Below are positions 1,954-62,046 of a DNA stretch of 64,000 nt, one piece after another. The stretch comes from Neoechinorhynchus agilis (Eukaryota > Animalia > Acanthocephala). The stretch is taken from contig CM121343.1 in NCBI GenBank assembly GCA_051530055.1, forward strand, positions 5,674,389 to 5,738,388, read 5' to 3'. The stretch's first letter is position 1. Every line of letters starts with the position of its first letter. The notes under the pieces were generated by a model. It saw nothing but the letters and a program-made list of their open reading frames with translations. It was not told where the DNA came from and ran no database searches. The translations under genes were made by a program, and so were the position numbers.

Positions 1954-3717
1954 TCGATATGCACCTTCAGAGGACACCAATAACAATCGGGAGAGTGCAA
2001 TTCATATTCGACATCCTCTTCGGTCCATCGCTCATTCTCCAGACCTTCAATAACACCATCAGCATATTTTCTGATTAAATCCCAAGCTTGGTCTATATGT
2101 TTAAGATTTGAGTACTCAGCACCAACACATAACCGAATTATTCTGCGGGACTTAATCTCGCAACTGGTCAAGTATATTTTGTGCGAAACATTTAAAAATC
2201 GAACCAAAAGCCCAGTTCGTTTGTTGTCACTCATCCGAAAGCAGACAAGTCCTGTTTGAGGCTCATTGACTAAAAATAGATCATGATCTTTTCCTTGGGT
2301 TTTGATTCGAAGTGCCATATACTTTGCTAACATAACAGTTCTTCGAATATGGCTCCGAAGACCGGTTAAACCATAAGTGGAGAGCACCATCCAAACTTTT
2401 ATAGCTTTAGAGGGTCTGCTTAACATAAGACCGTAATCTCGCATATCACAAAATTCGTCAGAGCACCCAGGTCTAAGATACGATACATCAGATATAGACA
2501 TTGCAGCTTTTAGATGGACCGCATGTTTTGTCCATAGACAACAACATCCGAGACCAGTAAGTAACCACTTATATGGATTAACAGTGATTGAATCACATTG
2601 ACCAAAAGAGAGATCCGTCTCTGACTGGGCTAAAAAGCGGCGCATTTCGGGGCATATGCAAATAACGTTAATATTTAGAACCTTATTAATGTTACCAGGA
2701 TTTAAGAGAGCGGCGCCGGAGTAAGATGCGTCCACATGCAACCATAAACTATAAGATTTTGCCAAACTAGAAAGCATCGGGATCGAATCGTTAGAACAAA
2801 CCGGAGTTGTTCCCAATGTTGCATAGATCATCAGTGGTTCTCGGCCTACACTGATGTCGCCAAGAATTGCAGTTTCGACGGCCTCCCGACGTGTCAATCC
2901 CAGTGAAATGTCGTCCACGTCCAACGTGCGAATTATTATGGGCTTATTTGCATCGTATGATCTTGTAAGATTTAGGATTTTTACTGCTTTACGAATACAA
3001 CTGTGCGATAGTTCCGATACATAGACGACAAATTGTCGCGAAACTGGGTGCTTAAGCCATAAGTTCTCAGTTTTCAGAAATGAGTTTGAGAAATCATGCT
3101 CTAGAACCATCAGATCGGCTACTGAGCAAGTATTTAAAAACTTTTGCCAAAACTTGATAAAGTTGGCCATAAGTATGATTGGACGAGGAAGCGACGGTAG
3201 TACATTTTGCCCGGGATTGCAAAGCTGCAGCTAAAACAACGATTGCGGCTTCACTTGCTGATGTTAACATTACATTCATTCCACCCTTTTCAATTGAGAA
3301 CGAATCACAGAGACCAAATGCTCTTCGGAGCCATTCCAAAACGGTTAGTTCCAATTCAACGCTCATTGGACTGCACTGCCAGCTGAACGCTACATTTCCT
3401 AATCCATTGGCCAATAGATCACCAATCAGTGATGCAAAACATGCCCCACTAGGAAAGTAAGCAAAGAATAACGAATGCTGCCAGTTTACAGAGCCAGGCA
3501 AAACAAAATCGCTGAACTGCTTTAGAACATCCACTATGGGTACAGGCGTATCGGGTACTTCGCCACCCAGAACGCCTTTTAAGTAACCCGGCCGGATATC
3601 AGTGGACGATGGTGTTACATCCGTGGCATCTTGGATACCGTCTTTGTTTGAATTCCGATACTTGATTATAGTCTCGGCTACCATAGTTAAGGCAAAACGG
3701 AAACTGTCAGCATCCAT
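1950..3717 (-). CDS. Group II PLP-dependent decarboxylase (aromatic-amino-acid/histidine/tyrosine decarboxylase family), interrupted by two TA-bounded hairpin inserts
   Basis: Motifs PGYL, WQHSLFFAYFP, SPMSVELE, SASEA, LHVDASYSG, NPYKW (PLP lysine), KVWMVL; ORFs 3094-3717 and 1950-3170 lie in different frames. Confidence 0.9.
2655..2704 (-). other. TA-bounded hairpin insert (48 nt + one TA), in frame, in the decarboxylase
   Basis: TA at both ends; arms aacattaata/tattaacgtt (9/10 paired); removal gives SGAALLCPEM (family AGSAFICPE). Confidence 0.6.
3053..3103 (-). other. TA-bounded hairpin insert (49 nt + one TA) at the decarboxylase frame break
   Basis: Arms catgatttctca/tgagaacttatg; removal joins the two ORFs as DGSKHPVSRQFVVY. 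Confidence 0.65.
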
Positions 3718-5309: not shown

Positions 5310-8017
5310 TTAATGACCTTGAGTATGCTTCGAGGGTTGCGTGGATTTGCTAAATTGGGATGCTGAAGTCCTAACAAATGCTTCGAGATCGCCAAGGGCA
5401 ATACTTTGGTCCTCATTTGACTTAAAAGGATTTTTACCCGCAGCACCGTGGAGGCCAATCATTGGATCAGTTGCTTCCTGGCTCACAAATGGGTTATTTG
5501 ATTGTATGAAGGTCGGTTGTAGCGCGGAGGGCGACGGGTTTTTTTCCAATGTTGCGAATAAATCCTCCACTGTTGATTCAGAGTCCTTGTGTTCTTGAGT
5601 TTTCATCGTGGACGGGATTTCGAAGTCCAAATCCAGCAAGTCTTCATGATGACCGAGATCCGAGTCGTTCTTTACAATGCTTTGCATTTGAGGACTTTTC
5701 CGCTTCTCAACGAACCCAGGTGATTTATGCGACACACTACAGGAAATACTATTGTTACCTTTTGATGTTCTTGTTCAAAAAGAGATATAGCTTTTGCTTC
5801 GTCTTCGATCGCTTTAATTTGCTCATCAACATTAATACCAGTAATTGGTCTAGAAAAGGAAGACGATATTTAGTACAGTCTGTGGCTCCAACTTACTTTG
5901 TAACCAATTCACTTGGTACAACTCTCTGATGTTGACTTTCTCGGGGGCCGGATGTCCCTTCGAGAGAAGCACAGTAAGTCTCTAGTGTAGCTAGTAAGGA
6001 CTCCGGTGCTTTTTTGAGATCAGGGATTTCATTTCTTTGTGTTCCGAAATTTTCCGCTGTTTTGAGAAAGTTGGTAACACTATCACTTCGCAAAATAAAT
6101 CCTCGATACATTTCGAGAGCTTCTTTACATTGGGGTTTCCTGAGATCAAAGAAGCATTCTAAATCAAGCTTTTAAAGGTAAGACGCGGATTTTTTGATCA
6201 ATGCAGCGTCGGCGTAAAAAGCAGATTTACGGTCCCGACGCTAATCTATTAGATTTAAAATGATTTTCTTCCCTTTCAAAAGACGGGAGCAGTCGCCAGC
6301 CTCAGCGAGGAAAAGAAACGACATAAGTACTCTTCGCTTGATGGGCATCAATATATGTATTCATCCCGATTGCGGTGGAAATGCTGGGATGCCTCGGAAA
6401 AGAAGCCGATTATTTCTTTTCCCGACTGGGAAAGATGCTGAAATATGCCACCGGCGACATGCGCTCCAGCAGCTTCCTGATGCAGCGAATCAGCGCGGCA
6501 ATGCGCGGCCATCAACGAAGCTGCCGAACAATCATGACGACGGTTGCAGAATTGGATGAAAAGGAGGAATTCGTGAATGATTAAATTAACTGATTTAAAA
6601 AAATAAGAAAATTTATTGTTTATGATTTTATGTTACACAATTCTACCATACCAAAGTGAAACGATACCACGAAATGGCAAACATGAAGTGGAGCACGAAG
6701 CATTTCGCTGGATTTATCTGGCTATGAACAAAAAAATCCATCGCGACATTTAAACTGGAGTATTAAATTTTCACCATAATTTTTTTACTTTGGATTAATG
6801 GTGCAAATTTCTACGAAGAAAAAAATGGTCACGTTGTCCTGATGAATATTATTATATTTTTATTCGCTATCTTGTACCAGCAAAATGCATAATTTTTCAA
6901 CTAGAACGCATTAGTAATTGAATGCTAAAAAGATGAATTTACCACAAGTTATTAAGATTCAAAAATAAACAAATGCATAGTAGATCTTTCGTGAAATGCA
7001 CAAAAATTTAATTCGACTCATGGTAAGTTTTTATTGCAACAGAATGAATTGCAAAATCGCCGTAAAAAAAGTAGTGATATTTTGTAAAGGATTTTGATTT
7101 CCGCAAAAATAGATACCTACCCAATACAGTGGTCATGGCATCATTATAACAGGCATATAACCTGATTATATCCTTGAACATAAGGTAGCAAGCGGCGCAA
7201 ACGATAGAATTCATGATTTCTACGCTAGTTAACTAAGTAAGAAAAATAAGAAAGTCGAGATTATATAGGATCGCCGATTACCGTAAATCCAGTGATTGCA
7301 TCTATTTGGGTTTGAATAATCGGAGTTACTTTGGACAACTAAATGTATGAGTAAAAATCAGGTCCTTTTAAAATTTTACAAACCTTTTCGAATGGCATTC
7401 TTGCAAGGGTTCCTCCATCTTCTCGCCTATAATCGACAATTTTATAAAGATATTTCCTTCAAATACGCACCCTCGTTTGATACGGCAAAGATCGAAGCCA
7501 TTAATACGATAAGCTTCCCGTTTACCGTCCAGATAGGCTGCATATTTACGAATGTGGGTAGACATTTCGAATCCCGTAAGACTTGAGCGGTCCCAGAATT
7601 GCCCTAACTGGAACCGTTGACTGTAAGAAGCAATACAAGCTTCAAATCGTTCATTTCCGGAATTCATAAGATGATGTATAGTGATGAGGGCTTTAAAAGT
7701 AACGATCCAGCTCGAGGTTTTTAATCTTTCCAATAAAAGTTCGACCATCTGTGGCACGGACACATTTGATTGATTTGTGCAAAGCAGTACAAAATCGATT
7801 CTCGTGTATTCAGCATTCATACCATGAGAATCGATAGTTTTAAGTAGTTGACATGTTTCCGTTTAGGTGGAATAAGTTCCTCGGTAGTTGCCTTGCAGAC
7901 TGCTCGTCCGACTGCTGACCCCGTTAGTGTGTGTTTAGCGGCTTGCAAACGATCAGTAAGGCTCTGTCCCCCTCCACCGCCACCGGTAAGACCGCCGCCG
8001 CCGACGTTGTAGTTCAT
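5310..8017 (-). CDS. PICALM: PICALM/AP180 clathrin-assembly protein (ANTH domain), multi-exon
   Basis: [68 protein letters not shown]-terminal DLLDLDF and NPF motifs; GT-AG introns traced. Confidence 0.93.
6285..6584 (+). mobile_element. 3' fragment of a CRE-like (RLE) non-LTR retrotransposon inside a PICALM intron
   Basis: EEKKRHKY...IPIAVEMLG...[18 protein letters not shown] matches the RLE C-terminal FVPxAVETxG...FLxQRISxAIQRGNAA motif. Confidence 0.75.
7788..7842 (-). other. TA-bounded hairpin insert (53 nt + one TA) in the PICALM ANTH coding region
   Basis: Perfect 10-bp arms atcgattctc/gagaatcgat; contains a stop and frameshift; removal gives KHVNYLLLCTN (family KHLDYLIQCTN). Confidence 0.85.
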
Positions 8018-19259: not shown

Positions 19260-19938
19260 AATATTTGTTCTGGTGATGAGGTGATTCCTACTCTCCGGAC
19301 AATAAAGATATCGATTCATTGCGATATTTCGCCGGGCAAATCCAACATTCTCAAACAATTTTGGATTAATGCTGGATTTGCCCAACGAAATATCGCAATG
19401 AATCAATATCTTTATTGTCCGGAGAGCAGGAATCACCTCAGCAACACTATAATACCTCCGAGGAACCTTTTACATCAGACTAATATTTGTTCTGTTGCTG
19501 AGGTGATTCCTACTCTCCGGACAATAAAGATATCGATTTATTGCGATATTTCGCCGGGCAAATCCAACATTCTCAAACAATTTTGGATTAATGCTGGATT
19601 TGCCCAACGAAATATCGCAATGAATCAATATCTTTATTGTCCGGAGAGCAGGAATCACCTCAGCAACACTATAATACCTCCGAGGAACCTTTTACATCAG
19701 ACTAATATTTGTTCTGTTGCTGAGGTGATTCCTACTCTCCGGACAATAAAGATATCGATTTATTGCGATATTTCACCGGGCAAATCCAACATTCTCAAAC
19801 AATTTTGGATTAATGCTTGAGAATGCTGGATTTACCCAGCGAAATATCGCAATGAATCAATATCTTTATTGTCCGGAGAGCAGGAATCACCTCAGCAACA
19901 CTATAATACCTCCATGGAACCTTTTACATCAGACTAAT
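19260..19938. repeat. Tandem array of three 222-bp units, each a ~176-bp foldback hairpin plus spacer
   Basis: gtgattcc at 19281, 19503, 19725; arms tgttgctgaggtgattcc...ggcaaatcca / tggatttgccc...ggaatcacctcagcaaca. Confidence 0.95.
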
Positions 19939-20540
19939 CTTGTTCTTTTGAACGTTTTTATATTTCCAGAAGATCTCAAACCGATATTTGCATGATCAAT
20001 GAGCAAAATTGGACGTGCAGCCAATCAGAGTCCGTGATATACTTTTGATCGAAGTTGAGATGGTAAGTTTATTCGTTCTTTTGAGCAGAAATTGCTAATG
20101 TTGGAGCGTTGTAATAGTTCGTTTCTCATTAAAAAAAGATTGGATTTTAAATTGTTTAAAAATGACTTTATTAAAGATTCCGTGGTTCACTGCAATTGTA
20201 TATGTTAGCGTGTTTTTTTCATAAATTAGGTGAAATAGTGTTTAAGGTTTTTTGATTTTAGAATACTCACTATTTCTCCAAAGTGCAACGCCTAATGCGT
20301 ATTTGCGGTTCTTTGTTTGGCGTTCATCCGCATATTTTTTGCCTTGTTCCCTATTGACAACTAGTGCCACGCTTGCAGAATATGAGACGAAGAGCGTGTG
20401 GGTTATGCAATGCACCACCACCACCACCACCGAGTGCTGCACAAGTTTATCTTATTCATCTTTCCGCATTTTTTGTGCCAACTTTAGGCAATTCGTTGAT
20501 TCATCTCAATCAAATCCACAATAAACTAAAATCAAACCGA

Positions 20541-23500
20541 ATGGGTTGTATATTTTTTGGTGCATTGTTGCTGTTAAGCGACCTAATGATTCCTGTTAAA
20601 CTTGACAAAATCAAAGTGGAAAAACTCATAGCTTATACTGCAGACACCGGGCTGCCTCCATCAATCGATCTCAGTGGCGGTGGAAAATTCAACAAGTTCG
20701 CATTCATGCCATAGACAATTCGGATTTCTTTATTTTTTTCTTATAAACCTAGGCAGGATTTCAAGGATCGATTTCGTTCAAATATTGAAAATAATTGGCG
20801 AACAACCTTGTTACATGCTGAGGAACATTCGCAAGTTAATACATTTCAAAAGGTTCGACCATGATATGAGGAGCACTTGTAAATTAAAGGATGAAATATT
20901 CATAAATTAGATTTACAAGGAAAATGACATATTCTATGTGAAGGAAAGGGATTTGATCGGCTTGATAAAAGAGATGGCTGACGATATGAACCAAGCAATC
21001 ATGAAGAAGCTTAAGGCAGTCGAGGTATTTTTGCTTTATAATCAAAAATTAAAATGCTCGCGTATAAGAATCTGGTCAGAACTACCGAAAAGTCATACGT
21101 ACAATTTATGGGAAAGCCGGAATCAAATCAGCAGAACTACCATCGCCATTATTACAATGCCAAACTACTGCAAATTTGTAATAATTCAACCAACCAAACT
21201 ACTTCGGCACCAACCACTGAAGAGCAGGTGGTCAAAAGTTCCAAGTTAGTTTCTTAAAATTAACTTTCGCAGTTTAAACTTTAAGATTAGTGGGCAGTGT
21301 CTAATTTTGGAAGCTGATAAACATTTCATGGATTTAGCAGTGAATCTTTCTTATAGTACTGTTCACGTACCAACGATAATATATGATCAAAGTATGCTTG
21401 TATATAAAATCGTATGTCTTTAACGTTAAAAAAAGGCAAAGAAATAATGGATTCTGCTGCATGGAGCTTTGATTTGAATCGAGCATTTTCAGAAAATTAC
21501 ATGAACGATCCTGAGATCACTTGGCAGTATTTCTGCAGTGCCACGGGTTTATACCGAACCTGGCCTGGTGAGTTTTTCCTAATAATTGACTGACAATGTT
21601 ACACCGATTAAGGAACTCGATGGACATATCCGGAGAATATGCCTCCGAATAATCAAGTGGATTTGTTTGATTGTCGTGTGAGGACATGGTATGTCAAGGC
21701 GACATCATCACCTCGGGATGTGATAATATTGATCGACAATAGTGGATCTATGACTGGTATAAAACGATCCATTGCGGTCCAGACTGTAGAAACCATCTTG
21801 GATACGTTGAGTGATGATGACTTTGTGAATATACTTTCTTTCAATAATGAAGTGAAATATGTTGACAAGTGCTTTGACCATGGTCTTATTCAAGCCACCG
21901 TGGAGAACAGAAAGGTTTTTGTAATTTTTATATATTTGTGTTAAATATATACGCATTTTAGCATCTCCAAGAAGCGATTGCACAATTACAAACTAAGGAT
22001 ATCGCCCATTTTATAAAAGCTTTCGAAATGGCTTTCAAGATACTTAATCAGGTTTATATATGTGATTTAGTGCATATTGCCGATAAAGTGAACGTATATG
22101 TAGGCACGATTGGGGATATCAAGAACTGAGAATGTTACATGCATTTGTCAGAGTCATTACACCAACAGTAGTCCATCCAGTGATGAACAAAATTGCAGAG
22201 CTTCTCCGAGCGCAAGTGAACAAAGGGAAATGTTTCTGGACAGTTCTGGCTGCAACAAAATGATAATGGTGGTGACGGATGGTTCAAGTGAAACTGCTGA
22301 ACAAGCATTCCGAAAATATAATTGGTTTCAGGACTATAACACCACGTGTCATCCAAAAGAGGTAAGGTTCTGAACGTTCAATATTATTTTAAACCTGTAG
22401 ATTCTGTGTAGACAAGAGTTTTCACGTATTTAATTGGACGCGAAATTAGCGATGAAAGGGCAGTTAAATGGATGGCGTGCTCTAATAAAGGTCTATTTTA
22501 AATTCAAGCCTAGTAATCAATATTCAATTCATTAGGTTTCTACGCTCACGTTTCAACACTTGAAGATATTCAAGATAATGTTCAGGTTTGTGTTTATATG
22601 CTGTGACATTTGCGTCAGCTTTTGACTCTGCTTAAAAAATTTAAAAAGAACACTACATGTACGGCTAACCAGGGAAATTTCATTTTTTTAAATATCTCTA
22701 AAGCATTTAATACCTTTAAGAGATCTTCTCTTTCATGCAGCTAATGAATTTGAATAAACAGTGTATACAAAAACAACCAAGTACGTCGAAACTATAACTC
22801 GTAAAGGCACTTTTTGGTAATCGTTTAAATATTTCCCTTAACCCTGAATGGAATTAGGCAATATATTGGAGCCAATGTTTTGTACAAAAGCTAATTTTAT
22901 CAGCTTTGAATCAATATTTGCGTTCGCGAGATCGGCTTACATGTAAAATGTCGGTACAAAAAAACGGACTTCACTACTCCAAGTTTTATCCAGCACACCA
23001 CGTAAGATTCTATTTCTAGCAACGGACTGGGACCATGAAATTAAGTAGTAACGGCGGTAGTGTTGATAATCCCTGCAAAAGTCTTAAGAAGCATCCAAAG
23101 TAGTATTTTTGCACACTACGCGGGGTTTCGATTGATGTTTACAAGAAATGGGTTCCCCTTTTCTATGCTCAGCTCGATGGTAGAAAAACCATATAAGAAA
23201 TCGGTTTGATCTTAAATGCATTATTTTTCAGCATTAATTTTCTGTCAAAACGTTTATTTCCGCTTACAATTTAAAGGATTACATTCCAGTCATATCAAGA
23301 CCAATCGCACTGTCCAATGACCACGTCACAGTGTGGAGCAGTGTATTTCTGGACATTGAGGTTTGTGTTTGAGTGCTTTACTATAATTCTACAGATCTTA
23401 TAGAAAAATGACCCACTGAAGGAATACAAGTGGTATCCATACAAGTTGACAGATCGTACAATGCCAATGGATGCTTTCAAGGCATGTTTTGGTCGTTGGT

Positions 23501-26500: not shown

Positions 26501-27664
26501 TCAAATGAGCTCCTAGTTTTATTCTTGAATGAATTTCGAAAATTTAGATCGATTAAAGACGTTCTGCGAACTACGTAAGGGATTCATCCTCTCAGTTTGT
26601 TAGTTATTAGTAAGCGTCTATTAATAACTAACAAACTGAGATGATGAATCCCTTACGTAGTTCGCAGAACGTCTTTAATCGAAAAAAAATCATTTACAGA
26701 TTGAACACTTCTAAACAATAATCATATACTCCCCGGTACCTTCTCATATATCGACATTTTGACGTAAATTTCATGAGTTTTTATATAATTTTTTTAACGA
26801 TATACAAAATTATCGTGGCATTTGCAGATTGCAATCTAACAATTTTTTCTCACCGGAAGCAGCATCACACGAGCGTTAAAAGTTCGTACTTACAAAAACG
26901 AAAAGTTTGGATACGAATTAACATTCATCTCCGTTTTTAAGATGCTATTGAAGAAAACTGTAAAGCGGATTTTCTAAACGCTTTTTATGTAATCAAAGAG
27001 TAAAATGTAGCATGTGCCCAAACCCGTAAAATCGATGAAAAAGTATTTTGCTCTCAGCGCATTGATGGTCATCTACTGTCAAAAGAATGTTAAAGTTGAA
27101 CGGAAATCTTTCGATAATACCGAATCTACTATATTATTTATAGTATTTTTTCGATGAAATAAAAAACGTTATAGTTTCACGCTGCTAGATCCCTAGATGA
27201 TGTTAAACTTCTACCTTCAATGCCAATTTCTCTGCCTTAGATTTAGACTAAAATTACATTTGCATCCACGAGGTTCCTGTATGGATTTTTTTTCGACATA
27301 TTGTATTTATATGATTTTTCTGTGGGATCCATTTACCAATGCTTTTGCAAGTCTGAATAATATTCAACTTTTTAGTTACACAATTCAAGGACTGCCACGT
27401 ACGAACATGTACCTCATTCATTATGATGACTGCTGCTCTGAATGTCAAGCAGAAATGGCCTTGAAGATTGTCAAGAAACCCATAAAGTTAAACGAAACTG
27501 AAAAATGTATACGACTAAAGTCAACTCCATATCGAGAGCGGCCGCAAAAGTGTTACTTTGTTAACGATGAGGAGATATCAGCAGCATGCTCAGGAGCGTA
27601 CCTTGTTAAATTATCAATTGTAGTGATCGCAATTCAACTAATGTTATTGATGTCCGCGCAATAA
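20541..27664 (+). CDS. CACNA2D: Voltage-gated calcium channel alpha2delta subunit (CACNA2D3/4, straightjacket-like), many short introns
   Basis: Signal-peptide-like start, YYNAK, DPEITWQYF, FDCRVRTWY, VWA MIDAS DNSGS, TDG, FTYLIGRE, YHPDLRP, GKFFGEVNG, hydrophobic C-terminus; most exons traced with GT/GC-AG introns. Confidence 0.93.
26549..26682. repeat. 134-bp near-perfect palindrome (61-bp arms, 1 mismatch) in the last alpha2delta intron
   Basis: tcgattaaagacgttctgcgaac...gttagttatta / taataactaac...gttcgcagaacgtctttaatcga. Confidence 0.95.
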
Positions 27665-28442: not shown

Positions 28443-31400
28443 TTATTTCCCAACATAGCGCTTAAACAATCTCCTAGAAATGCGTTTTAAATGATCAATT
28501 GATTTTAATTGATTACCTAAACATTTTCTTCGATTTCACCAAATCCTCAAAATATTTAGATCGCTTTTTAGCCAATGATATGATCTAAAGATTGGGTAGA
28601 AGAATATTAGAAACATTTCTGACTAAAAAATTGATTTTTACCTCATCAGGAAGGCCTGCCAATTTCGCAACATTAAACCCGTGACTCTTGTTGCACGGGC
28701 CGCTGGTGTCCATTCGATATAGAAGGGTAATTGTGTTAGATTTCTCATTCATAGTAAAGCTCTAAATTACACTTCCAATTACGGCACCCGAAATTAACAC
28801 AACAAACCATATGAGCCAATGTAACATCTCTCTTCTCAAACTCAGCTACGATTGAGTGATAATGAGTCGAAAAAATGACTCGGCATTTTAATCGAACGCA
28901 GCGATCGAGTACAGCTGAAGCAATTGCAGTTCCATCGAACGTAGATGTTCCACGGCCAAGTTCATCAATCAAAACAAGAGACTGGTGCGTAGCAACTTCC
29001 ACGATGGGCTTAATTTCAGCCATTTCGGCAAAAAAAGTACTGATTCCTAATGTCGAGTCGCCGATGCCAGCACCGATTCTGGTAAATATACGGTCACAAG
29101 CACTAAGTACCATTTTCGAGCAGGGCACATGGATTCCGACGTGAGCCATCCACACCGAAATTCCCACTTGTCTAAGTAATGTGCTTTTACCGCCCATATT
29201 CGGTCCGGTTAAGACTATTGTACTGGGCGAATCACCTATGCCACCCATCTTTATATCATTCGGAATCAGATTAGAAGGAGAGGAATATAAAAGGATAGGA
29301 TGTCGTGAATCAAGCATTTCAAGATAAGAGCATCCATTGTTCACAAATTCAGCCCGGCTCACAGAATCGGAAAACAAAGAAGAGCAGTATTGCAACCATT
29401 TTGCCAATGAACACAGTACATCTAACACGGAAACAAAGTCCAGTGCCTTGATCCAGTCGCAGTAATCCTTATCGAAGGTACTAAGCATCCAACGAAATGA
29501 TGAACCACGGGCTAAATCGAGCTTTATCTCCGCTTCAACCAACTCATCTAATTGCTTATTTATCCAATCAGTTTTGTATCGACTAACATTTTTCTTTGTG
29601 GATGTTAAGATGAAGCAAGCGGGCAGTTTGTGGCCTGTGGAATCATTTCGTATTTCCATTTGATATCGATTACGACCTGTTCCCACATATTTAATGGACA
29701 ACTGTGTTAAAAGTGATGATTAAAAATGTTTATGGTTGACTAACTTTGGCTTTGGCCTCTTGATCTGCACGATAAGCCTCTAATTTCTGTTGTATCTCAA
29801 TGACACGATTATTGGCCTCGTTGAACTCAGGGCTTGATTCCGTAGACTCGAACGTGGAGCTTTCAAACCTACTTAGTTTCTCACGAATGTTTTCAAATTT
29901 GAAAGATGGGAGAAGTCGCCTCAGCATGATTGGACAATCTTCCAACAGTTCAAACTCCTCAATAATGTCAATCATTACCAAAATCGCATTTGCACTTTTC
30001 ATCAATAACGAATGCTTTCTACGCGTATAAGTATCCTCTTCAAACAGTACAGCACGATTCTCGGGATGAGTTACTGGTTTTGCACTCAATGAGTGAATCC
30101 TAAAAGGAAAGGTGAATGTAATAATGTCGATATTTGCGAGGAGGTACCGGGGAATGTGATTGGAATCATTATGGTTAGAAGTCTACACCCGCGGTAAATG
30201 GTTATTTCGATTAAAAACGTTCTGCGAACCTCGTCGGGTTCATCATCATCAGTTTGTTGGTAGTATACGCTATCGATGTTTAGTAGATGAAATTAATCCA
30301 ACACAAAATTGCATCGATTTGTGGTGTATTCCCTAAGCAGCTTTCTTGTTTAAACAATAGGCAATTAAAAACCAGTAATCCTAACAAGTGTCCGTATATG
30401 ACCATAAAATCTTGCAAACTAAGCATGCAATACTAAAAATCGATTGGCTTAGAAAAGTATCGAAATCTAGAAGGAACGCGCTTTGGATTTTCAATTAATA
30501 AATTGTTGAGGATACGAAATTACAATTACTCACTTTTCTTCACCACTCTTAATTTTTCGACCTCCGTTACTCGTTCAATGATCCACTGTTAAATCGTGGT
30601 TTGCAATTCTACAAAAAAATATTTAAACTTTGGATCAAAACCCATTCTGGTTTACGTTTCTAGAACTTGGTTTAGCTGAAAAACCGCAAAAATTTGTTTG
30701 CAGTGATGCGTTTTAGATAACTGAACAGTTTTAAGCTGAGTAGACAAGAAAACCTAAAAATGACCACCAGTTCTTTAGACAATTTAATATTAATATGGAG
30801 ATCAAAATATATGTATGATGCAAAAGGTCGGGTGAAAGATGTGAAGGACAATAGAAAACTGTAAACAACTTAACGTTGAAATTTGCAATAAAACTAGTGC
30901 ACAATACTGGCGTTCGATTATTTCGGACGTAAGCTTAAAAGTCACTTTGTATTACGGTGATTTGATCCAATACTCGAAGAAGAACAGATACTTCTCAAGA
31001 ATGGTTGGCGGATTGCCTCATAAAGTAAGCTAAAGTTTTAGCAGATATCTTGGATTAAACAGAACTTTAAATGATATTTCTCTAGGAATTATTCGCAGAT
31101 AAAAGAATGAATAGGAATGACTGAGTCAATACAGATTTATTGCTTTCATGAAATCAGCTAGAAAAGTGATTAAAAATTAGAGCATAAATATTACTTTAAG
31201 TGTTTATGTGAACATCCCTTACGCGGCTGATTTTTTGGGCACACAGCCCACCGAAGCGATTTGTACAAACTCATAACCGTGTATTTCAGAGTTTAAGTGA
31301 CTCCATGGGCTTTCATAATCCAAATCGGAGGACTGTGTGCTCAAGAAATCAGTAGTGCAAGCGATGTTCACTTAAGTACTTAAAAAATGACCGGTAGCCA

Positions 31401-33432
31401 AACATGAGGAAAAATAAATACTACTTCTAAAAAATGCTTTGAGCATTCAAAACCTAATTTGGCAAATAAAGAATCGTAAATTATGATGTGTTAATTGAAA
31501 CCAAATACTAACTTCATGAGCATTCTTTGCGTATCGGAAGGCAATTGCTTTATCTTGTTTACAATATCTTCACAACGTCCATTGGAAATCCACTCTATGG
31601 CATCAACTCGTTCGTTTATGCCAGTTATGTTCTTTAATGGATTTAGGAGCCAATCTCTGAGCATTCGACGTCCACTATTGGTCACGCACTTATCCAAGCA
31701 ACTGAACAACGAATCGGTTTCTTCACCGCTGTTTCCAATATGACCAATAATTCCAAGACTGAGAGCGGAGCTGGAATCCACGACCATTCTATCGCAATCT
31801 TCATCGACAATGACAAATTCCCGTCTGCTAAGAAGCTCTTGGTCGATGAGGCAAAATCTTAAATATCCAATCAATAAACCTATTGATGTCATTGTCCTTG
31901 AAAAGGGCGGGTTCTTGAGCTTTTCTAAAATATCCCGCTCTACATGGGGTTTTAAATATTCAACAAGTTCAAGACTGCTCCACGTGTTGTACTTACAAAA
32001 CGAATGAATTTCGCGAAAAAAGAAGCAACAAATGCGAATTCATTCGTTTGTTATTTAATGATGCATTTTCAATAAGGCATTTTCCATACATGTTCAGTGT
32101 GTTCCACAGCTCAGTTGAAACTTTCAATCGATCACATAAAATCTGTGAAGCCGGGTGATTAATCAAACACGTTCGGACAGTTCCGTAAAAACGGTCAGGG
32201 CAGCATAGTCTTACGAAAAATCGCCCTTGGGACACATCCACAAAGACTAGGCAAACGCTCATATCCAATAATTCCGTCACAGCGTACATGTACCCATTCA
32301 GTGGTCCAGAGATGATATCTTCATTCAAAGATTCGAGATCGTAGGTGAATGTGCCTGGAGTGGTGATTTCACATATTTCTCGGTTCACAACTTGGGAAGA
32401 TTTACGGCGATCAGTTTTCGTGCGCTCAGACATTGCTTTCTATCGCGACTTCTGATTTTACCCGGATTTACACGATAAAAAAAGAAGCCACGATCTAGTT
32501 GACTCAGTTTGTTCAACTCTTGCGATTTTATAACCCTGTTTCACCAAATGATTGGCAGCTTTGGCAAAAGCAATCTCGGGAAAGCCGCAATGAGCAAATC
32601 TGCCTTTCATAAACGTCATGCTCAACTCTTTGGCCACAATCATAGCATCCATGTGATAAAATTCGTAAAATTTGCCTACCTAAACATAGAGCAGAGGAAA
32701 AAATTTAAGAAATGCAAGGGGAAAATATCGATTATTGCTTAAATCTGATGTTTTTGGAATCGATCAAGCACACAACAATGCGAAATTAGACTAGAATTTT
32801 AAGCACGACTATTAATGAATTATTTACGAAGCATAAATGGACGGAACGATTGTTGTACCTTAAAGCATAAAAGAGTATCGAAATTGGCACTTTTCAACGT
32901 CCACCATTGCTGCATGGCCTAAAATTCATAGACAGATTTATGATTATAAGAATCTCTTACGGGAGATTGTTGCGATAGAAAGGAAGATGGAACATAAAGG
33001 GTGGATGGATCATAGTCTGGATGAGTTGATAATCGCTTCTTGGAATCTTTAATGTTCTTTGGGAGTATAAAATCGAGCTTGGTGTGAATGAAATCTCGAA
33101 AGTTGTCATCCTCTATAATCTGCGAATCTTCATTGGAGTTCAATTGGCTGTCTGTGAGTTGAGTGGAAAATGATTGGCATTCAAAAGAAGTGTCTATCTT
33201 TCCTATATAAGAAGATTAAATTCTTTAAATATACTATTATCTCACCGCACGAATCTAAAGTCTGAATTTCATAGTTCCTCGATGATCGAAGTATTTTATT
33301 ATGGCCAGGCGAGCTGTTTTCACAATCACTAAATGATTGAGACTGCATAGCGGGCATCTCTATCGCAGAGGTTTCACTATCCGTTCGAGAGAAATAATCC
33401 CTTATTGTCCGACTCTTCCTTGCTCGTTTCAT
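28443..33432 (-). CDS. MSH6: DNA mismatch repair protein MSH6, multi-exon, with two hairpin inserts in coding sequence
   Basis: PIP-like [93 protein letters not shown]. Confidence 0.95.
31994..32053 (-). other. TA-bounded hairpin insert (58 nt + one TA) in MSH6
   Basis: 13-bp perfect core aaacgaatgaatt/aattcattcgttt; removal restores frame as ENASLNKYNTWSS. Confidence 0.85.
32441..32497 (-). other. TA-bounded hairpin insert in MSH6 (frame needs a 54- or 57-nt removal, not the 55-nt TA-TA removal)
   Basis: 12-bp stem atcgtggcttct/agaagtcgcgat (2 G-U pairs); two in-frame stops between VEQTEST and KAMSER. Confidence 0.65.
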
Positions 33433-34249: not shown

Positions 34250-35524
34250 ATTGTACGTTGGCGAATTCTGTCCCCGGTGTTATCGATACTCATTTATTTG
34301 AGAAATATTTCACAAGGTTTTCCTTGCCTCTTCAGTCGCTATTGCTTGTAATTTTTTAATGTGTGAGTTTGTGTCCTGGCGAATCCTGTCCCCGGTGTTA
34401 TCGATACTCATTTATTTGAGAAATATTTCACAAGGTTTTTCCTTGCTTCTTCAGTCTCTATTGCTTGTAAGTTTTAAATGTGTGAGTTGGTGTCTTGGCG
34501 AATCCTGTCCCCGGTGTTATCGATACTCATTTATTTGCGAAATATTTCACAAGGTTTTCCTTGCCTCTTCAGTCGCTATTGCTTGTAAGTTTTTAATGTG
34601 TGAGTTGGTGTCTTGACGAATTCTGTCCCCGGTGTTGTCGATACTCATTTATTAATTGCGAAATATTTCACAAGGTTTTCCTTGCCTCTTCAGTCGCTAT
34701 TGCTTTTAAGTTTTAAATGTGTGAGTTGGTGTCTTGGCGAATCTGTCCCGGTGTTGTCGATACTCATTTATAATTGCGAAATATTTCACAAGGTTTTCCT
34801 TGCCTCTTCAGTCGCTATTGCTTCTAAGTTTTAAATGTGTGAGGTGGTGTCTTGGTGAATCCTGTCTCCGGTGTTATCGATACCCATTTATAATTGCGAA
34901 ATATTTCACAAGGTTTTCCTTGCCTCTTTGGTCGCTATTGCTTCTAAGTTTTAAATGTGTGAGTTGGTGTCTTGGTGAATCCTGTCTCCGGTGTTATCGA
35001 TACCCATTTATAATTGCGAAATATTTCACAAGGTTTTCCTTGCCTCTTTGGTCGCTATTGCTTCTAAGTTTTAAATGTGTGAGTTGGTGCTTTGGCGAAT
35101 CCTGTCTCCGATGTTATCGATACTCATTTATTTCTTTGAGAAATATTTCACAAGGTTTTCCTTGCCTCTTCAGTCGCTATTGCTTGTAAGTTTTAAATGT
35201 GTGAGTTGGTATCTTTGCTAATTCTGTCCTCGGTGTTGTCGATACTCATTTATTTGCGAAATATTTCACAAGGTTTTCCTTGCCTCTTCAGTCGCTATTG
35301 TTTCGCAAGTTTTTCGACTGAAGAGGCAAGGAAAACCTTGTGAAATATTTCGCAATTAATAAATGAGTATCGACAACACCGGGGACCGAATTCGCCAAGA
35401 CACCACCTCACACATTTAAAACTTACAAGCAATAGCGACTGAAGAGGCAAGGAAAACCTTGTGAAATATTTCTCAAATAAATGAGTATCGATAACACCGG
35501 GGACAGGATTCGCCAATGTACAAT
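34250..35524. mobile_element. Foldback-like element: ~9 forward 118-121-bp tandem units, an inversion at ~35300, ~1.7 reverse units, unique inverted termini
   Basis: Unit ggcgaattctgtccccggtgttatcgatac...gtgtctt; ends attgtacgttggcgaa / ttcgccaatgtacaat. Confidence 0.85.
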
Positions 35525-36240: not shown

Positions 36241-37473
36241 TTAAAATTTACTTGTCTGTTCCGAATGCCCATTCTTTGAATCGCAATGATCGCTTCGAGG
36301 TGACGGGCTCGGAGCCTTGATCGTATCGTTTGTAGTGGTTGTATTGACGGCAGGCGGTCTTTCTACATCTCCCGGAGCTACAAGCTCATGATCTCCCATA
36401 TTGGACGAAGTCTGAAAAACACCACCATTGCTTGATTTATCAGGTTTCAAATCTCTAATTTGCTTGATAAGATAGGCTTTTTCTTCGTTAAATTGCTCGT
36501 CATCGGCACGGTCTGCCGTAAATCCAAGCAAAAAGTCGATCAGTCGCTCCCGGTTTCTGAGAAGAATGTCAAAAATTGCCTTTGGTTTGTTTGGATTTGC
36601 TACAAATATTTTAAATACGTGAAATGTCTCAAACTGAATGTGCGAGCTTTTCTCCCTAAACAAATTCATCATCATCTTAAGATTATCGACATTCTCAATA
36701 AATCGATACATAACATCGGTGAAGTTTCGGTCTAGCATCAGTTCACCCAATAGTTTGAGTGACTGTCGCCGAGTTACGTAGTTGTCCGAAAGCAATAGTC
36801 GTTCATAATTGCTAAAGAATAGATCGTAGTTTTCCTGAATATACGCGGCGGACATCGCTCGATGTCGGACCAAAAATTCCTAAATTAGACAATGAAAATC
36901 GATTTAATATCACGCAATTACCTTAAAGGTCGAGAAGGCATCTGACGAAACGTCAAAAGTGTTCATTTGAGCGTAGGCGAAGAAGTTATAAAAATCTCCA
37001 GATTCCAGAACTTCCTTTGCGAGTTCCTCGTGTCTAGCGCATTCTCGGAGCATTGTTCCGCAATTTAAGGCAATTTCTGAGTTTTCGTATCCTCGAATCA
37101 GCGTCTGCAGAATCTGTTTATGAGCCATTATATAATCAACTGTCGGATACACCTTCCCAATTTGGCGTCGCAGCATATTATTGAAAATATTTGCCATTTC
37201 CTTTTTGTCCTCGAATGATACTCTGGTTAAATTTGTTATCAAAGTCAGCAGAAGATTAGAAGCGTAAATCTCTTGAGCTAACGTCGCAATAAGTTCACTT
37301 TGTGGATCTTGTTCAGGAGTACCATAGAGCATGCCTTTGATGGTTGTCAAATGCTTCGAGATTTCATCATGTGCCTTGTCGATATTTTTGCCTCCTTTCT
37401 CCAATACATGGAGATTGTCCCGCAATGAACGCACGACGTCCGCTGGTTTCTGACGACCTTTAAATAACGGCAT
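36241..37473 (-). CDS. CAB39: MO25/CAB39, two exons
   Basis: [77 protein letters not shown]; one GT-AG intron. Confidence 0.95.
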
Positions 37474-38308: not shown

Positions 38309-38902
38309 ATGCGCCTGTTTGCCCTTCTCATTTTGTATAAAGACGCTTCTGAGGCTCGCCTTCTCAAAGATGCACATGACCTGTCGACATTTGGGTTTTT
38401 CCAGAGATCTGGAGTAAAAGAATTTATAATCTTTACTGCCCGGACGCTAATCGATCGTTCACAACTTGATTCAAGGTCAACGGTTCAACAAGGTGAATAC
38501 ACCATGCACGCTTATGTCCGGAAGGATCGATTATCGGCAGTAGCCGTATCGTGCAATAAATACCCTCGTCGGGTAGCCCACAGCCTTCTAGTTCGTCTTT
38601 TGATGGATTTCGAAATCGCGTGTCCTAGTTCTCAGTGGCATACTGGTGATCCTTCGCGGATTTTATTTGAACGAATCACTCAATTGCTTAATGAGTACCA
38701 AGAACCGTCTCAGGCGGATAATATTTTAAAAATACAAGCGGATTTGGATGAGACAAAGATTGTCTTACACACTACAATGGAATCATTACTTCAACGTGGA
38801 GAAACCCTGGATGATCTCGTTCAGAGAAGCAGTCTACTCAGCCTAGAATCGAAGGCGTTCTACACCGTAGCGAAAAAATCCAATCGATGTTGTTCCCTAT
38901 AA
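38309..38902 (+). CDS. YKT6: Longin R-SNARE YKT6, single exon
   Basis: DLSTFGFFQRSGVKEF, YPRRVAH, DLDETKIVLH, LLQRGETLDDLV, C-terminal CCSL prenylation box. Confidence 0.95.
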   Translation: MRLFALLILYKDASEARLLKDAHDLSTFGFFQRSGVKEFIIFTARTLIDRSQLDSRSTVQQGEYTMHAYVRKDRLSAVAVSCNKYPRRVAHSLLVRLLMDFEIACPSSQWHTGDPSRILFERITQLLNEYQEPSQADNILKIQADLDETKIVLHTTMESLLQRGETLDDLVQRSSLLSLESKAFYTVAKKSNRCCSL

Positions 38903-39751: not shown

Positions 39752-42684
39752 ATGATGCCTGACGACACAGCCGGAGACAATCTCGATTCGGTCGCAGTGG
39801 TACACGGGGGCAATAATCAGAGGCACTGCTCCTCGAACGCTGCCGTTCATCACCAATTCCCCAATTTTGATCCATCAAGAATGTGCTACCCGCCTGCACC
39901 TCCACCGAATGACGGCATCCAAAATGGAAACAATGAAATCGCAGCCATTGACATAAAGGCGTCATCGCTGACCGTTGGTCAACTAGCAGCCTCAAACGCT
40001 CCACTCTGCTTCTACGCACCGCAACAGCAGCAGCAGCAGCAGCAGCAGCCTGTACCGCAGTGCCCCTCGTCATGTAACCGATTTATCGCAGCCCAGCAAC
40101 CGCCGCCCCAACAAAAGAATCTGACCATTTCGCTGAACAACGCCCGGTCGCGCGGACCCATTGGGGGCGGCGGCGCCGGTGCATTGCCTTCAACGTCTCT
40201 TGATACACTCGATGTACTCGCTCAACTTGATAACCATCCGGATCGACAAGTATTCGTTGATAATCTAAGACTCATATGGAGCGAACATAATATCAAATTC
40301 CGTTCACTTCCGACAATATCCAAAAAGTCTATTGATCTATATCTTTTATACCTTTTGGTCAAGGATCGAAACGGATTTCTTGAGGTTACACGCAAAAAAC
40401 AGTGGAAGGAAGTGGCAAATGCTCTCGGCATTACAAATTGCGGAAGCGCGGCCTTTGGGGTTAAACGAAACTACAGCAAGTCGGGTCTATTTTTCTATGA
40501 ATGCAGATTCGAATTGAACAATGCTGATCCTAAGGTAGTGATTGCTGATTATGAAAAACAACATGGAACCAATCACTCATTCGCATCTGCCGTTGAAGGT
40601 TCCAGCAGCTACCATACTCAACAACAGCAACAGAGGAACTCGCCTTGTACGGCCGGCACGGGTTGTCCTTCTCGAAAGAGAAAACGGACGTCCATTCCTG
40701 AAGGAGGATTCAAATCTAGTCCTGAATCTGGGAGTGCTCAAACACCCCAACAGTCGCAAACTGTAAGGCAACCGAACGTTAACCACAACAGCAACAGTAT
40801 GATGCCTAAGCAGCCACCGTTTGTTCCTTGCAGCAGCGCACCGTCTGCCCCAATGGGAACAAGCATGGGGAACTACTATCCCGTCAATACTCCGTCTTCT
40901 CGGATGATGCAGCTTGACTGTGGCACTGTCTGTCAACCATTGACTGTGCCACCAGTTCCATCATCGAACAATTACTATTTGGGCGCGATGCAAAATCACT
41001 GAGTGATTCCTTCTGATATGTATATTTTGCATCGACCACATACATGCATCCTCAACAGCAACAGGGGTGGGTACCACCATCTCAGTTTCGACCGAATGAT
41101 ATTCGATTTGGCACAGTCCATTCAGTCGATGATCCAACCAGGCAATATCCCGTCTCAAATCATGCTGGACTGGTTATGACAGCCCCTCAGCTTGTACAAC
41201 CACGAATGTTTTATCCACATGCAACCCTTCCTGCACACCACCACCATCAAACGAATGCTTATCCAACGTTACAAACAATGCAGCCACCGCCTTCGCAGTT
41301 GGAAGAGCACTCATCGGATAATCCAGTCTCTGGTCCAACCGGACCTGTTACTCAATCTCCACCGCCCAAAGTTGTCAGCCTTTCCGCAACGGAAAAGCGT
41401 ACTTCAATCATAGCTCCAATGGCGATCGCCCGCATTCAACCAGGTACCCACTTGGGACATGAACCGATTAACTTGAGCAGAGTATACATGTCTTTGAAGT
41501 GTGGATTAAGATCTGAGATTAAGTGGTCTTTAGAAGCACTAGCGTCTTTGCTGGTCATAGATGGGAATCCATCGCCGATTCAGTACATGGACTTGAAAAA
41601 TTTGCCGAGATTGCTGGAGTTAATTATAGATCTTACTCATAAATCCATCGATCGTATAGTATGCACCAGTTCGTCAAATATTGAGGAGACACCGTTCGAT
41701 CGAGACTTCGCGGAGTCATGTATAGTAACTTTGTCTTTAATCATAAGGAACCTATCTTTTCTACCGCAAAATTTCTCAATTCTAGCATCTTGTTCCGGTT
41801 TGGTACAAGCTCTTGATTGGATGTTAGGCGTACAATTTCCCGTTGTTATATCAAAGAGCTCTCGTGACATCGTGACAGAAAGCGCCCTGGTAACATTGGC
41901 TAACATCGGAGGATGTCTTCGACTTGATCCGTCGAGCATAAATCGGTCATTGATCAGGCGGTTGGTCGTGTGGTCCTCTGATGCAAGAGTACTCGAAGCA
42001 GCGAAAGATTCTGATCCTTGTACGAATCTAACCGGACAGAGGCTTGCGATCGAATGCATGGCGAAAATGAGCGTTTATGAAAATAACATGAGACTTCTAT
42101 CTCAAGTTATTTCGGACAAATTATTAGAGTCACTGCTGCTAACCCTGAACGAGTGGCTTGATGAACCAGTTGGAGTTTTGTTCAGTGACAAACATACGCT
42201 TAATGAATTGAGCGTCAACATGATCAATGGAATTCTGAGTGCAGAAGACTCTCCGAGGATAAAAAACATCCTATCATTGGTTGCTTTATCAACACTTAAA
42301 AACAGACTACTCAAACATTTCGTGTTCGAGCTCAGTAGACTTGTTGGGAAAAGCCGTGTCGATGAAAATGACTTTGCTTGTGCACTCAAGTGCTCCAAGT
42401 GCCTTGTCCAGTCCTTGAGACTTGCAAATCGGCAGGAAAAAAGGCGATGGAGAAGACGGGCCATGTTTGAAAGATTGCTCCTCAATACTGTCTCCAAGTA
42501 TCCAACAATGCCGCCAAAGCTCAGCGTATCTTTACATGAATGCCTCAGTCTAGTCGCTCAACCCGCCAACACAACCCGACCCACATCATTCACCTCGTCT
42601 TTATCATTTGAAAGCGACGGTGGAGGCGACAGAGGAGGCGGTGGCGCCGTCGTGAGCTGCAACAGTAGGCAACGGGCGACGTAA
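39752..42684 (+). CDS. ARID1: ARID1/Osa/BAF250 SWI/SNF subunit; two ORFs joined by removal of a TA-bounded hairpin
   Basis: ARID domain (IDLYLLYLLVK..QWKEVANALG..SAAFGVKRNY..FYECRF); BAF250_C (RVYMSLKCGL..W.LE.L; LSLIIRNLSF; LAIECMAKMSV.ENN). Confidence 0.88.
40976..41042 (+). other. TA-bounded hairpin insert (65 nt + one TA) in ARID1
   Basis: 11-bp perfect arms cgatgcaaaat/attttgcatcg with further pairing out to both TAs; removal fuses the ORFs as NNYYMHPQQ. Confidence 0.8.
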
Positions 42685-60015: not shown

Positions 60016-61834
60016 TCAGCATGCACTTTCCTTCGTATTCTTGACGGCTTCTTCATTGAATTCCACCGCCCAGACCTTAAACGGTCGATTGAACGATGGG
60101 GAGGTTACACGGATATGAAATTTACTTTGAGTGATCTATCAGAAGCAACTGTTAAAATGCGGCGGCTCTTCAGATCAAATCCTATAATGGAAATGGGATG
60201 TCCAGCATCGCAAAAGGAAGCTTGACTGATTTTGCTGGAGTATTTGTATAATTCGAGAACAGTACTGAAGTAGACATACCATTCTGGACGGATGGTGCCG
60301 CAGCACCCCTGACAGAGCCTAATTGGAACTTCGTATCCGTATATGGGCAGAACTGATCGATGAGGTGAGCAGGAATCACATGCGACATCGCTTCTCAGAT
60401 ACGAAGACTATTTTGAGAATCGATGACATAAAGCTTTGCCGCACTTTCTGCAGTGATGCTGATTCCGGTCTTTTAGAAAATATCTTAAAATACACTAAAT
60501 ACCTGACGAACGCCCATGGTTTTTTTCTCCCACATATCCTTGAGACACCAAATGAACGGCTTTCCACATATCTCACAATTGTCCGATCTCGACCACTCGG
60601 CAACCTAGCGAAGAAAATGATGAAACATTAAGAAGGAGCAGTAAAAGGGCTCATTTGGACGGTATCGAAACTTTGAAAACCTAGAAAAACATCCAAAGGG
60701 GAGCTTTTTTTAAATGAACAGGGCTATTTCCGTTGAATTTCCCGAACGAAGTAATTATGTAGTCAAACGGGGGGGGCGGGAAGATGGTTCAAAATGAAAC
60801 CTGCATTCGATTCACGTTTTTGGAGATGTTCCAAAATGCAACAACTCCATTTTCATAAGCAGCAATGAGGTGAGAAAAGCCGGTTTCACTGTCGATCTTC
60901 ATAAGTGACAGTCCAGTTGCGACGTTCACATCGTCCGGCTGTCCATGTAGTTCAAATCGTTCGCCTCGTTTGTTACCGATGTCCCATACGATGATTACAT
61001 CACACGATGCCGAAAAGAGTCTTTCCGTTTCTGCATCCCAACAGAGGCACTTTACTGATCCTAGAGAAGAACTTTTTTAGGCAGAATGTGAGTACAGGAG
61101 TAGCAAACCCGAATGACCGACTAGACAAGTAGCTGCCGTCGTTTCGTCTTCTTCCCTTCGATAGGAATTCAAGAATTGAATATGTCCACATTGTTCGCCA
61201 ATGAACACACATCCACTAACTTCGTCCACACTTTTTGTTTGTTTCATAGTTCAAAGCGGCAAGCAAAAATAGGAAAGTACTAACCAAATGCAGGTCGTTG
61301 GTGAGCTGAATGACAACGAAGAGATTAAGGCCCCATCCTGAGTAGAATGATAACACAGCAATTTGTCCTGCCCGGTACTCAAGAGCCAATGATGCTGGTG
61401 ACTGTTTGTGAGTGCACTGAGTGTCTTCGAGTGACCGATGCAATCGAAGACGTGACTAACGCTGTTCAGATCATCACTCAAAAGGTAACCCTAACGAGTT
61501 CAAACGTGAACACTCAAGAACGTGGACACAAACCATTATTAGGCCGTCTTCGAGACCTACGAAGATCTGTCTGCTGTGTTCAACGTACTCCAAACAGGAC
61601 GGTAGTACCGGAAGGTATTGACAGACACTCGGCCAAAATCGTCCGCTCTCGCGCTTCAGCCAAACACGTACTGATCTTAACAAAAACGAGATGAACGCTC
61701 AGTTTGACAAATGCTCATAAGTACCTGTCGCTCGATATTGTTATGAACCCATCGTCGTCCGAGATTAATGCCGCGCCCGTAACCTCCCGAGCGAAATCAC
61801 TGAGTCTGCACAGAAGGTTGAGTTTGATGGCCAT
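60016..61834 (-). CDS. WDFY2: WD-repeat and FYVE domain protein (WDFY1/2-like), multi-exon
   Basis: SDRSVRVWLKRESGRFWPSV, VFIGE, IVWDIG, FYVE EWSRSDNCEICGKPF.W..K.MW..RQHHCRKCGK, GYEVPIRLC. Confidence 0.92.
60381..60430 (-). other. Hairpin insert (48 nt; TA left, CA right) splitting the FYVE zinc finger
   Basis: Arms catcgattctca/tgagaagcgatg (11/12); in-frame TAG; removal gives HHCRKCGKALCDSCS. Confidence 0.8.
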
Positions 61835-62046
61835 TTGCCGATTCGCACTAGTTTGACAGCTCTCAAAACTACAGCTCATATGTTCCTCTTCCACGAGACG
61901 GCAGGAAGAATTTCCACAATCTGCTTGGAAACGTCGGGCAATCGCTTTCTGTCCTGTTTTCTTTTTCCTACCACTCCACTGAACGGTTTTGATCGTTCAA
62001 ATCTGGAAGGGCGGGTCCGCGAAATTTAGGTGACCCATCATCCGTT

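Follow-up and report, generated by a model that had tools for sequence, protein, structure and literature searches.

The window analysed here, a stretch of 64,000 nucleotides (nt) of contig CM121343.1 (assembly GCA_051530055.1) from the acanthocephalan Neoechinorhynchus agilis, a parasite of fish, contains at least six short hairpins (E1 to E6, 48-65 nt, Table 1) that break coding exons, two of them in MSH6 and one each in four other genes. On balance, these hairpins are best read as tiny inserts resembling miniature inverted-repeat transposable elements (MITEs), with a TA target and inverted-repeat ends, that leave the transcript as non-canonical introns. The hairpins, the positions at which they break the reading frames, the in-frame products of their removal, the matches of these products to homologues and the broken state of the deposited gene models can all be observed directly. 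The hairpin inserts point to an unreported, non-standard kind of intron in an animal.

The hairpin from which the analysis started is E1, which reads on the minus strand ...GAAAATGCATCATTAAA-TA-ACAAACGAATGAATTCGC-19-nt loop-GCGAAATTCATTCGTTTTG-TA-AGTACAAC. The original prediction described a TA-flanked hairpin at 31994-32053 with arms of about 18 bp, the removal of which would undo a frameshift in MSH6. RNAfold agrees, forming 18 pairs with two 1-nt bulges around a perfect core of 13 bp (-17.9 kcal/mol); folding from TA to TA gives z = -4.0, a stability matched by none of 200 shuffles, but z weakens to -1.8 when longer flanks are included. The MSH6 frame before E1 extends for 148 codons until it meets TAA at 31995, and the frame after E1, of 182 codons, is offset by 1. 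The frame arithmetic bears out the predicted repair: removal of 58 nt yields ENASLNKYNTWS with the join TCATTAAATAAGTACAAC, in which ENASLN is fused in frame to KYNTWSS. Four registers of removal (e.g. 32052..31995 and 31996-32053) give one identical product, because TAA occurs at both ends. The proposed match of the join to the FWDASKTL segment of MSH6 was likewise recovered by phmmer, whose alignment with human MSH6 crosses the join without a gap and sets Trp opposite the Trp of FWDASK.

Judged by its sequence, MSH6 is otherwise complete and colinear. A joined fragment of it matches two NCBI proteins of N. agilis at 90-97% identity. With both hairpins taken out, its 994-residue product contains MutS domains I, III, IV and V and aligns with human MSH6 in a single match (residues 94-994 with human residues 19-996, E = 4e-160); the GT-AG introns of the manual model are 42-57, 179 and about 1407 nt long. 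The NCBI/BRAKER annotation, in contrast, cuts the gene into three models (MutS_I, MutS_III, MutS_V), of which one stops within E2 and another translates E1 and then splices at GTAAGT. The relatives of MSH6 on Logan contigs L004 and L005 contain an ordinary GT-AG intron and lack a hairpin. The relative on L004 (4585-4647, Logan ERR10899966) has the VVNREVC motif in common with N. agilis, a plain GTGAGT...CATAG intron and densely packed neighbouring genes. Just upstream of the N. agilis MSH6 gene lies a 118-120-bp satellite of about nine copies (34258-35313 / 35130-35482), terminating in an inverted copy that creates an inverted repeat with 125-nt arms.

The deposited model that translates E1 (ACOME3_009852) embodies an alternative in which there is no unusual removal: the hairpin is translated and the transcript is spliced canonically from GTAAGT (31996) to an AG at 31897. 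The resulting 100-nt intron (GTAAGT...TTTTCAAG, 31996-31897) has a perfect donor and a good acceptor tract (CCCTTTTCAAG), and its product is in frame and scores 166.8 bits against human MSH6 by phmmer, compared with 167.0 bits for the hairpin-out product; the two models also score alike with Pfam, because the MutS domain matches do not extend over E1. However, this splice would discard 33 codons with coding-like usage (+6.7, the same as the mean of coding sequence) and a GC content of 40%, as against 24-37% in MSH6 introns, including the Trp aligned to human FWDASK. It would add 19 residues without homology and would require an intron twice as long as the usual short introns here (42-57 nt). 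Moreover, this line of argument does not carry over to E3, E4 and E6, for which taking out the hairpin is either the sole solution or plainly the best one. Removal of E1 is thus favoured by codon usage, by the Trp alignment and by analogy with these three hairpins, and translation of E1 followed by canonical splicing appears unlikely. The claim that GT-AG alternatives would delete the Trp or shrink to a 10-nt intron stands in so far as no in-frame GT-AG, GC-AG or AT-AC intron at E1 retains KYNTW, but it missed both the 100-nt option and a weak 73-nt GC-AG option (32064-31992) that retains YNTW.

At E4, the Pfam ANTH domain scores 101.1 bits when 53 nt are removed, 95.8 bits when 47 nt are removed, 81.8 bits for the best GT-AG alternative and 75.6 bits for the deposited start. 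No GT-AG or GC-AG intron at E4 retains CTNQSN. The 53-nt product aligns without gaps to seven homologues over PKRKH-x3-L-x2-CT, a segment of invariant length; therefore, TA-to-TA removal is pinned at E4 independently of E1. The deposited ANTH model (7371-8020, minus strand) begins at an ATG in the loop of E4 and loses the N-terminal exon; about 60 N-terminal residues are missing from it. At E3, frames of 425 and 550 codons in differing phase are parted by nothing but a hairpin, and neither a GT-AG nor a GC-AG intron can join them; the frame is restored by removal of 65 nt (TA...TA) or of 47 nt (40986-41032, CGA repeat). The deposited ARID1-like gene (39752-42684, plus strand) is split at E3 into two models, ARID and BAF250_C, that lie 42 nt apart. 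At E6, where there is no GT-AG or GC-AG intron of 30 nt or more, removal of 48 nt at an ATGT repeat (U/A...C/A, the slash marking the cut) gives CRKCGKALCDSCS and a Pfam FYVE score of 51.5 bits, compared with 42-43.6 bits for other lengths or read-through.

The remaining two hairpins are E2 and E5. E2, with a stem of 12 pairs including two G.U pairs (z = -5.0), carries in-frame TAA and TAG codons between VEQTES and MSERTK, and removal of 57 nt leaves a spacing equal to that of the flatworm and human orthologues. At E5, TA-to-TA removal of 49 nt restores the frame, and the Pfam match spans the join. A seventh element may be present in the N-terminal part of the alpha2-delta gene (candidate E7), where no in-frame GT-AG intron bridges the hairpin; a comparison of this region with solved structures gave no match. 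Deposited gene models break or are truncated at four of the six elements. The other introns of the hairpin-bearing genes are plain GT-AG introns, and therefore the hairpin elements form a distinct class. Some canonical GT-AG introns of the window fall in the same size range, namely one of 42 nt in the Mo25 gene (36874-36915, minus strand) and another, of 38 or 44 nt, in the FYVE gene (60530-60580, minus strand).

Across these five genes, all supported by homology, the six hairpins sit at frame breaks or in-frame stops and have stems of 10-18 pairs. An in-frame, stop-free removal in which exon 1 ends with U, the insert starts with A and exon 2 starts with A is possible for every one of them. 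The junction bases are U/A on the 5′ side in all six, and U/A or C/A on the 3′ side in five, with G/A in E2; in each case the repaired exon junction reads TA, which is what insertion into a TA target would leave. The borders are TA...TA in E1, E3, E4 and E5, TA...CA in E6 and TA...GA in E2, so that TA...TA describes four elements of six and fails on the 3′ side of two. Direct repeats at the ends consist of TAA (E1), TA or CGA (E3), TA (E4 and E5), ATGT (E6) or A alone (E2). Two simpler border rules were discarded. A removal of the hairpin and one further base works for E1-E3 but not for E4-E6, and no constant offset from the stem suits all six; direct repeats as the sole guide would take 55 nt from E2 at its TAGA repeat, out of frame. 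E4, E5 and E6 have the arm CATCGATTCTCA in common, with unrelated loops, and score 53-62 bits with a covariance model built on them (R1), which detects no additional copy in the window.

E4-E6 were found by scanning for hairpins that bridge open reading frames (ORFs) and reading the candidates. Strong hairpins bridge long ORFs in 4 of 18 cases, compared with 5.6% for random stretches (P = 0.016). At a looser threshold 36 hairpins were observed against 17 in shuffles; because about half of these are expected by chance, only the stronger stems were counted. A TA-to-TA fold-energy scan was abandoned as far too permissive, with about 300 hits on each strand, and a listing of all adjacent ORF pairs was too noisy for use.

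Several observations weigh against removal of the hairpins as non-canonical introns. E1 taken alone is ambiguous, since its 100-nt alternative is in frame and equals the hairpin-out product in its phmmer score; E2 has a 36-nt GT-AG option, and its conspicuous TAGA...TAGA repeat is out of frame (55 nt); and E5 has a weak GC-AG option, also of 49 nt. No consensus of end dinucleotides was found across the elements, TA...TA is absent from the 3′ side of E2 and E6, and the U/A...N/A rule was found post hoc, with a chance of about 0.2 that it would be satisfied in all six given the candidate sites. E1, E2 and E3 each lack a second copy in the window. The removal, its RNA level, the exact cut sites and the machinery are inferred from these features of the sequence. 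Protein searches returned no transcript-derived N. agilis sequence across any join. The exact TA-to-TA excision put forward in the original prediction has nevertheless gained strong indirect support from the discovery of five further hairpins and from the 53-nt removal pinned in the ANTH gene, although at E1 itself excision is still a deduction.

The proposed explanation is that E1 is a very small MITE-like insertion of 58 nt, bearing inverted repeats at its ends and flanked by a duplicated TA target, in a coding exon of MSH6, a gene otherwise intact, and that it is one of a class of hairpin inserts, 48-65 nt long, that are frequent in coding exons of N. agilis; their density in the window is about one per 10 kb. 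Each insert would be cut exactly from the pre-mRNA together with one copy of the target, leaving U to close exon 1 and A to open exon 2. It would thus constitute a non-canonical intron, the two ends of which are brought together by the stem. RNA-level removal is the most economical assumption because the genes are otherwise intact, because the elements match the size of normal short introns here, and because a like anatomy is documented by RNA-seq in Amoebophrya and described for euglenids, while Fritillaria has non-canonical introns derived from MITEs. The machinery might be a spliceosome that recognises intron ends less strictly, as in Fritillaria, or a structure-guided endonuclease and a ligase, the route suspected for the nonconventional introns of euglenids; the pyrimidine-A (YpA) steps at both cuts would suggest that either is suitable. 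A bolder version, which we regard as possible but doubtful, is that acanthocephalan coding exons harbour thousands of TA-flanked hairpins of 50-65 nt, all removed exactly under the guidance of structure and without GT-AG recognition. In that version, the route may consist of an endonuclease, cutting at YpA steps where the stem begins, and a ligase, in convergence with euglenid introns.

Close parallels are known from protists. Like the elements described here, the introner elements of the parasitic dinoflagellate Amoebophrya have neither GT-AG ends nor any fixed end dinucleotides, are MITE-like with families set by their inverted repeats, and have their ends joined as a hairpin by inverted repeats of 8-20 nt, a range into which all six stems fall (Farhat et al. 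2021, PMC7789003). Direct repeats of 3-5 nt overlap the exon/intron borders in Amoebophrya (PMC7789003), compared with 1-4 nt, mostly TA, in N. agilis. The N. agilis elements are shorter, at 48-65 nt, and they reside in an animal and are read from its DNA, whereas those of the protist were validated by RNA-seq. The nonconventional introns of euglenids and diplonemids resemble the elements in their variable non-canonical borders, paired ends, junction repeats like target-site duplications, pyrimidine/purine junctions (with the exception of G/A in E2) and coexistence with GT-AG introns, and they are stated not to have been seen outside Euglenozoa (PMC6221363, PMC12501133, PMC11282704). The Euglena signature N3-CDG ... 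CH'G-N5-6/R is absent, E1 starting with AACAAAC and E4 with AAA-ACT, and stems of 10-18 bp contrast with about 3 bp in euglenid introns, for which circular products and late removal are also known.

Among animals, the tunicate Fritillaria borealis has non-canonical introns derived from MITEs (Henriet et al. 2019, as summarised in PMC11282704). According to that summary, these are transposon-like inverted-repeat elements in species-specific gene positions that are removed without GT-AG, as is proposed here, but they favour AG-AC and AG-AT ends, form most of the introns of the genome and are processed by a modified U2 spliceosome; the N. agilis elements, unlike those of Fritillaria as summarised, have U/A...Y/A ends and are a minority beside normal GT-AG introns. 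Stowaway MITEs, which are related to Tc1/mariner, offer a likeness at the level of DNA: they are palindromic, lack coding capacity and have terminal inverted repeats and a TA target duplication, which is found in E1, E3, E4 and E5 and with an altered 3′ copy in E2 (GA) and E6 (CA). In contrast to Stowaway elements, those of N. agilis are far below the usual MITE size and were all recognised in coding exons, although the scan was aimed at hairpins that break ORFs; a source of transposase for them was not identified. A near-perfect palindrome of 134 nt with 60-bp arms (26549-26682, plus strand), situated in an ordinary GT-AG intron of the alpha2-delta gene, is possibly a longer relative of the hairpins in exons, because its ends (TCGATTAAAG..., TCGATT...) resemble the ATCGATT of the E4-E6 arms.

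Other known classes fit less well. The elements do not have the ends of U2-type GT-AG or GC-AG introns, and the alternatives of this type at E1 (100 nt), E2 (36 nt) and E5 (GC-AG, 49 nt) would alter the protein. Nor do they resemble U12 AT-AC introns, which start with ATATCC and whose branch site, TCCTTAAC, is situated 10-20 nt before the 3′ end: in-frame AT-AC pairs occur without the ATATCC start, and a TTCCTTC motif is found only in E3, about 30 nt from the end. The elements are predicted to fold as single, continuous stems in which the bulges are of 1 nt, dissimilar to the bulge-helix-bulge of tRNA introns (two 3-nt bulges, 4 bp apart) and to the twin 7-nt loops with CNGNNGN cut by IRE1, and hairpin ends other than GT-AG exclude mirtrons. 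An Rfam scan of the whole window returned no family at threshold, and a tRNA scan of it returned nothing.

The internal eliminated sequences (IESs) of ciliates share with the elements a short length, TA-to-TA extent, location in coding sequence and retention of one TA, raising the alternative that the hairpins are precisely excised from the DNA of somatic nuclei by programmed elimination and that the assembly represents the germline or unexcised form. The TA...TA borders of four elements and the short terminal direct repeats (TAA, TA, ATGT, CGA) would agree with this, as would a DNA source of whole worms that included egg-filled females and a transcriptome that by BUSCO is more complete than the genome. 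Nevertheless, ciliate IESs leave the DNA of a separate somatic nucleus, while N. agilis is an animal with the standard genetic code; E1, which reads TAACAAAC, departs from the ciliate end consensus (TAYAG, in full TAYAGYNR); E2 and E6 have no in-frame 3′ TA; and two G.U pairs of the E2 stem can pair only in the sense RNA. We know of no animal in which precise intragenic DNA elimination occurs, and we consider it improbable here. Still less probable is that the hairpins are simply disabling mutations, whether recent or polymorphic transposon insertions or the marks of pseudogenes in a gene-losing parasite. The genome is reduced and many BUSCO genes are missing from it, the DNA was partly pooled from about 50 worms, and E4-E6 resemble one mobile family, but the copies of that family are not brand new, because their arms have diverged. 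Apart from the hairpins, the five genes retain long frames and full-length homology (425 and 550 codons in the ARID1-like gene, 994 amino acids in MSH6), and six knock-outs of core genes within 64 kb would be implausible.

An error of assembly, or a ribosome that bypasses the hairpin during translation in the manner of phage T4 gene 60, would dispense with removal altogether. The assembly is a hybrid of Oxford Nanopore R9.4 and Illumina reads, the hairpins contain stop codons as bypass sites do, and matching TAC codons stand on both sides of E3. The assembly, however, rests on Illumina super-reads with a k-mer completeness of 96%, and an artefact would not yield unique 50-nt hairpins with shared arms exactly at frame breaks. 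The take-off and landing codons differ at E1 (AAU and GUA before AAG) and E4 (UUA and GUA), and the matching pair (UAC and UAC) at E3 is the only one among the six, at variance with bypass of the T4 gene 60 type. Translational bypass of 50-65 nt is, to our knowledge, without precedent in nuclear mRNAs, and this explanation of the hairpins is very improbable.

If the hairpins are indeed non-canonical introns, they would add a second animal lineage to the euglenozoans, Amoebophrya and one tunicate in which inverted-repeat, non-GT-AG introns are known so far, with short and easily synthesised examples beside normal GT-AG introns. They would be a compact system in which to test structure in place of splice-site sequence, a live case of the conversion of transposons to introns, and a check on the view of such introns as a protist oddity. 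The N. agilis genome paper, which reports a 46.2-Mb hybrid assembly with BRAKER annotation and a BUSCO completeness of 47% for the genome and 55% for the transcriptome, never mentions introns; no paper linking acanthocephalans with introns or splice sites was found in the library searched, and a recent survey of introners leaves rotifers and acanthocephalans unmentioned. Structure-guided removal of thousands of elements, if true, would account for the low BUSCO completeness as well as for the fragmentation of the gene models. Because the annotation appears to be broken at the elements, gene counts, lists of 'missing' BUSCO genes and lists of drug targets may need revision.

Table 1. Hairpin elements of the N. 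agilis window and the MSH6 gene, with the exon joins predicted upon removal.
Feature	Position	Strand	Description	Predicted join
E1	31995..32052	-	58 nt; its removal restores the MSH6 frame	TCATTAAATAAGTACAACACG
E1 5′ arm	32034-32051	-		
E1 loop	32015-32033	-	19 nt	
E1 3′ arm	31995-32014	-		
E1 flanking TAs	32052-32053 and 31994-31995			
E2	32440..32496	-	MSH6; hairpin 32442-32494, AG-ATCGTGGCTTCT...AGAAGTCGCGAT-AG	GAGTCAACTAAAGCAATGTCT
E3	40977..41041	+	ARID1-like gene; core 40986-41034, perfect 11-bp stem, TGA inside	AACAATTACTACATGCATCC
E4	7789..7841	-	ANTH/PICALM-like gene; core 7794-7835, ATCGATTCTCATG...CACGAGAATCGAT, 53 nt TA to TA	GTCAACTACTTACTGCTTTGC
E5	3054..3102	-	pyridoxal-dependent decarboxylase gene; core 3058-3098, CATGATTTCTCA...TGAGAACTTATG	GATGGTTCTAAGCACCCAGTT
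E6	60382..60429	-	FYVE domain of WD/FYVE gene; core 60386-60425, CATCGATTCTCA...TGAGAAGCGATG, in-frame TAG	GGCAAAGCTTTATGTGATTCC
E7 (candidate only)	20876..20919	+	calcium-channel alpha2-delta gene, N-terminal part; 12-pair hairpin, one in-frame TAG	
MSH6 gene	28513..33432	-	manual model, 994 amino acids, 7 GT-AG introns and two hairpin interruptions	

The window has other features of note. An intact single-exon ORF for a YKT6-like SNARE (38309-38902, plus strand), with Longin and Synaptobrevin domains and a C-terminal CCSL, has no entry among the gene models listed for the stretch; it overlaps, at its 5′ end, with the start of a mitochondrial-type ribosomal L7/L12 gene on the opposite strand. 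Three copies of a 222-bp tandem repeat (19260-19950), containing nested inverted repeats with arms of up to 176 nt, are placed between a gene for an unknown protein of 434 amino acids and the alpha2-delta gene. Further tandem arrays are located at 362-981 (312 bp, two copies), 54845-55815 (119 bp, eight copies, 79% alike) and 62043-62579 (184 bp, three copies). Decayed pieces of retroelements (9732-11412, minus strand, and 45689-46003, plus strand), with weak matches to RVT_1 and to the endonuclease/exonuclease/phosphatase family and a YADD motif, fall in two long stretches without a gene among the models listed. An intergenic palindromic element of 141 nt (46791-46931, plus strand), with 46-nt arms that are 98% complementary, resembles a conventional MITE.

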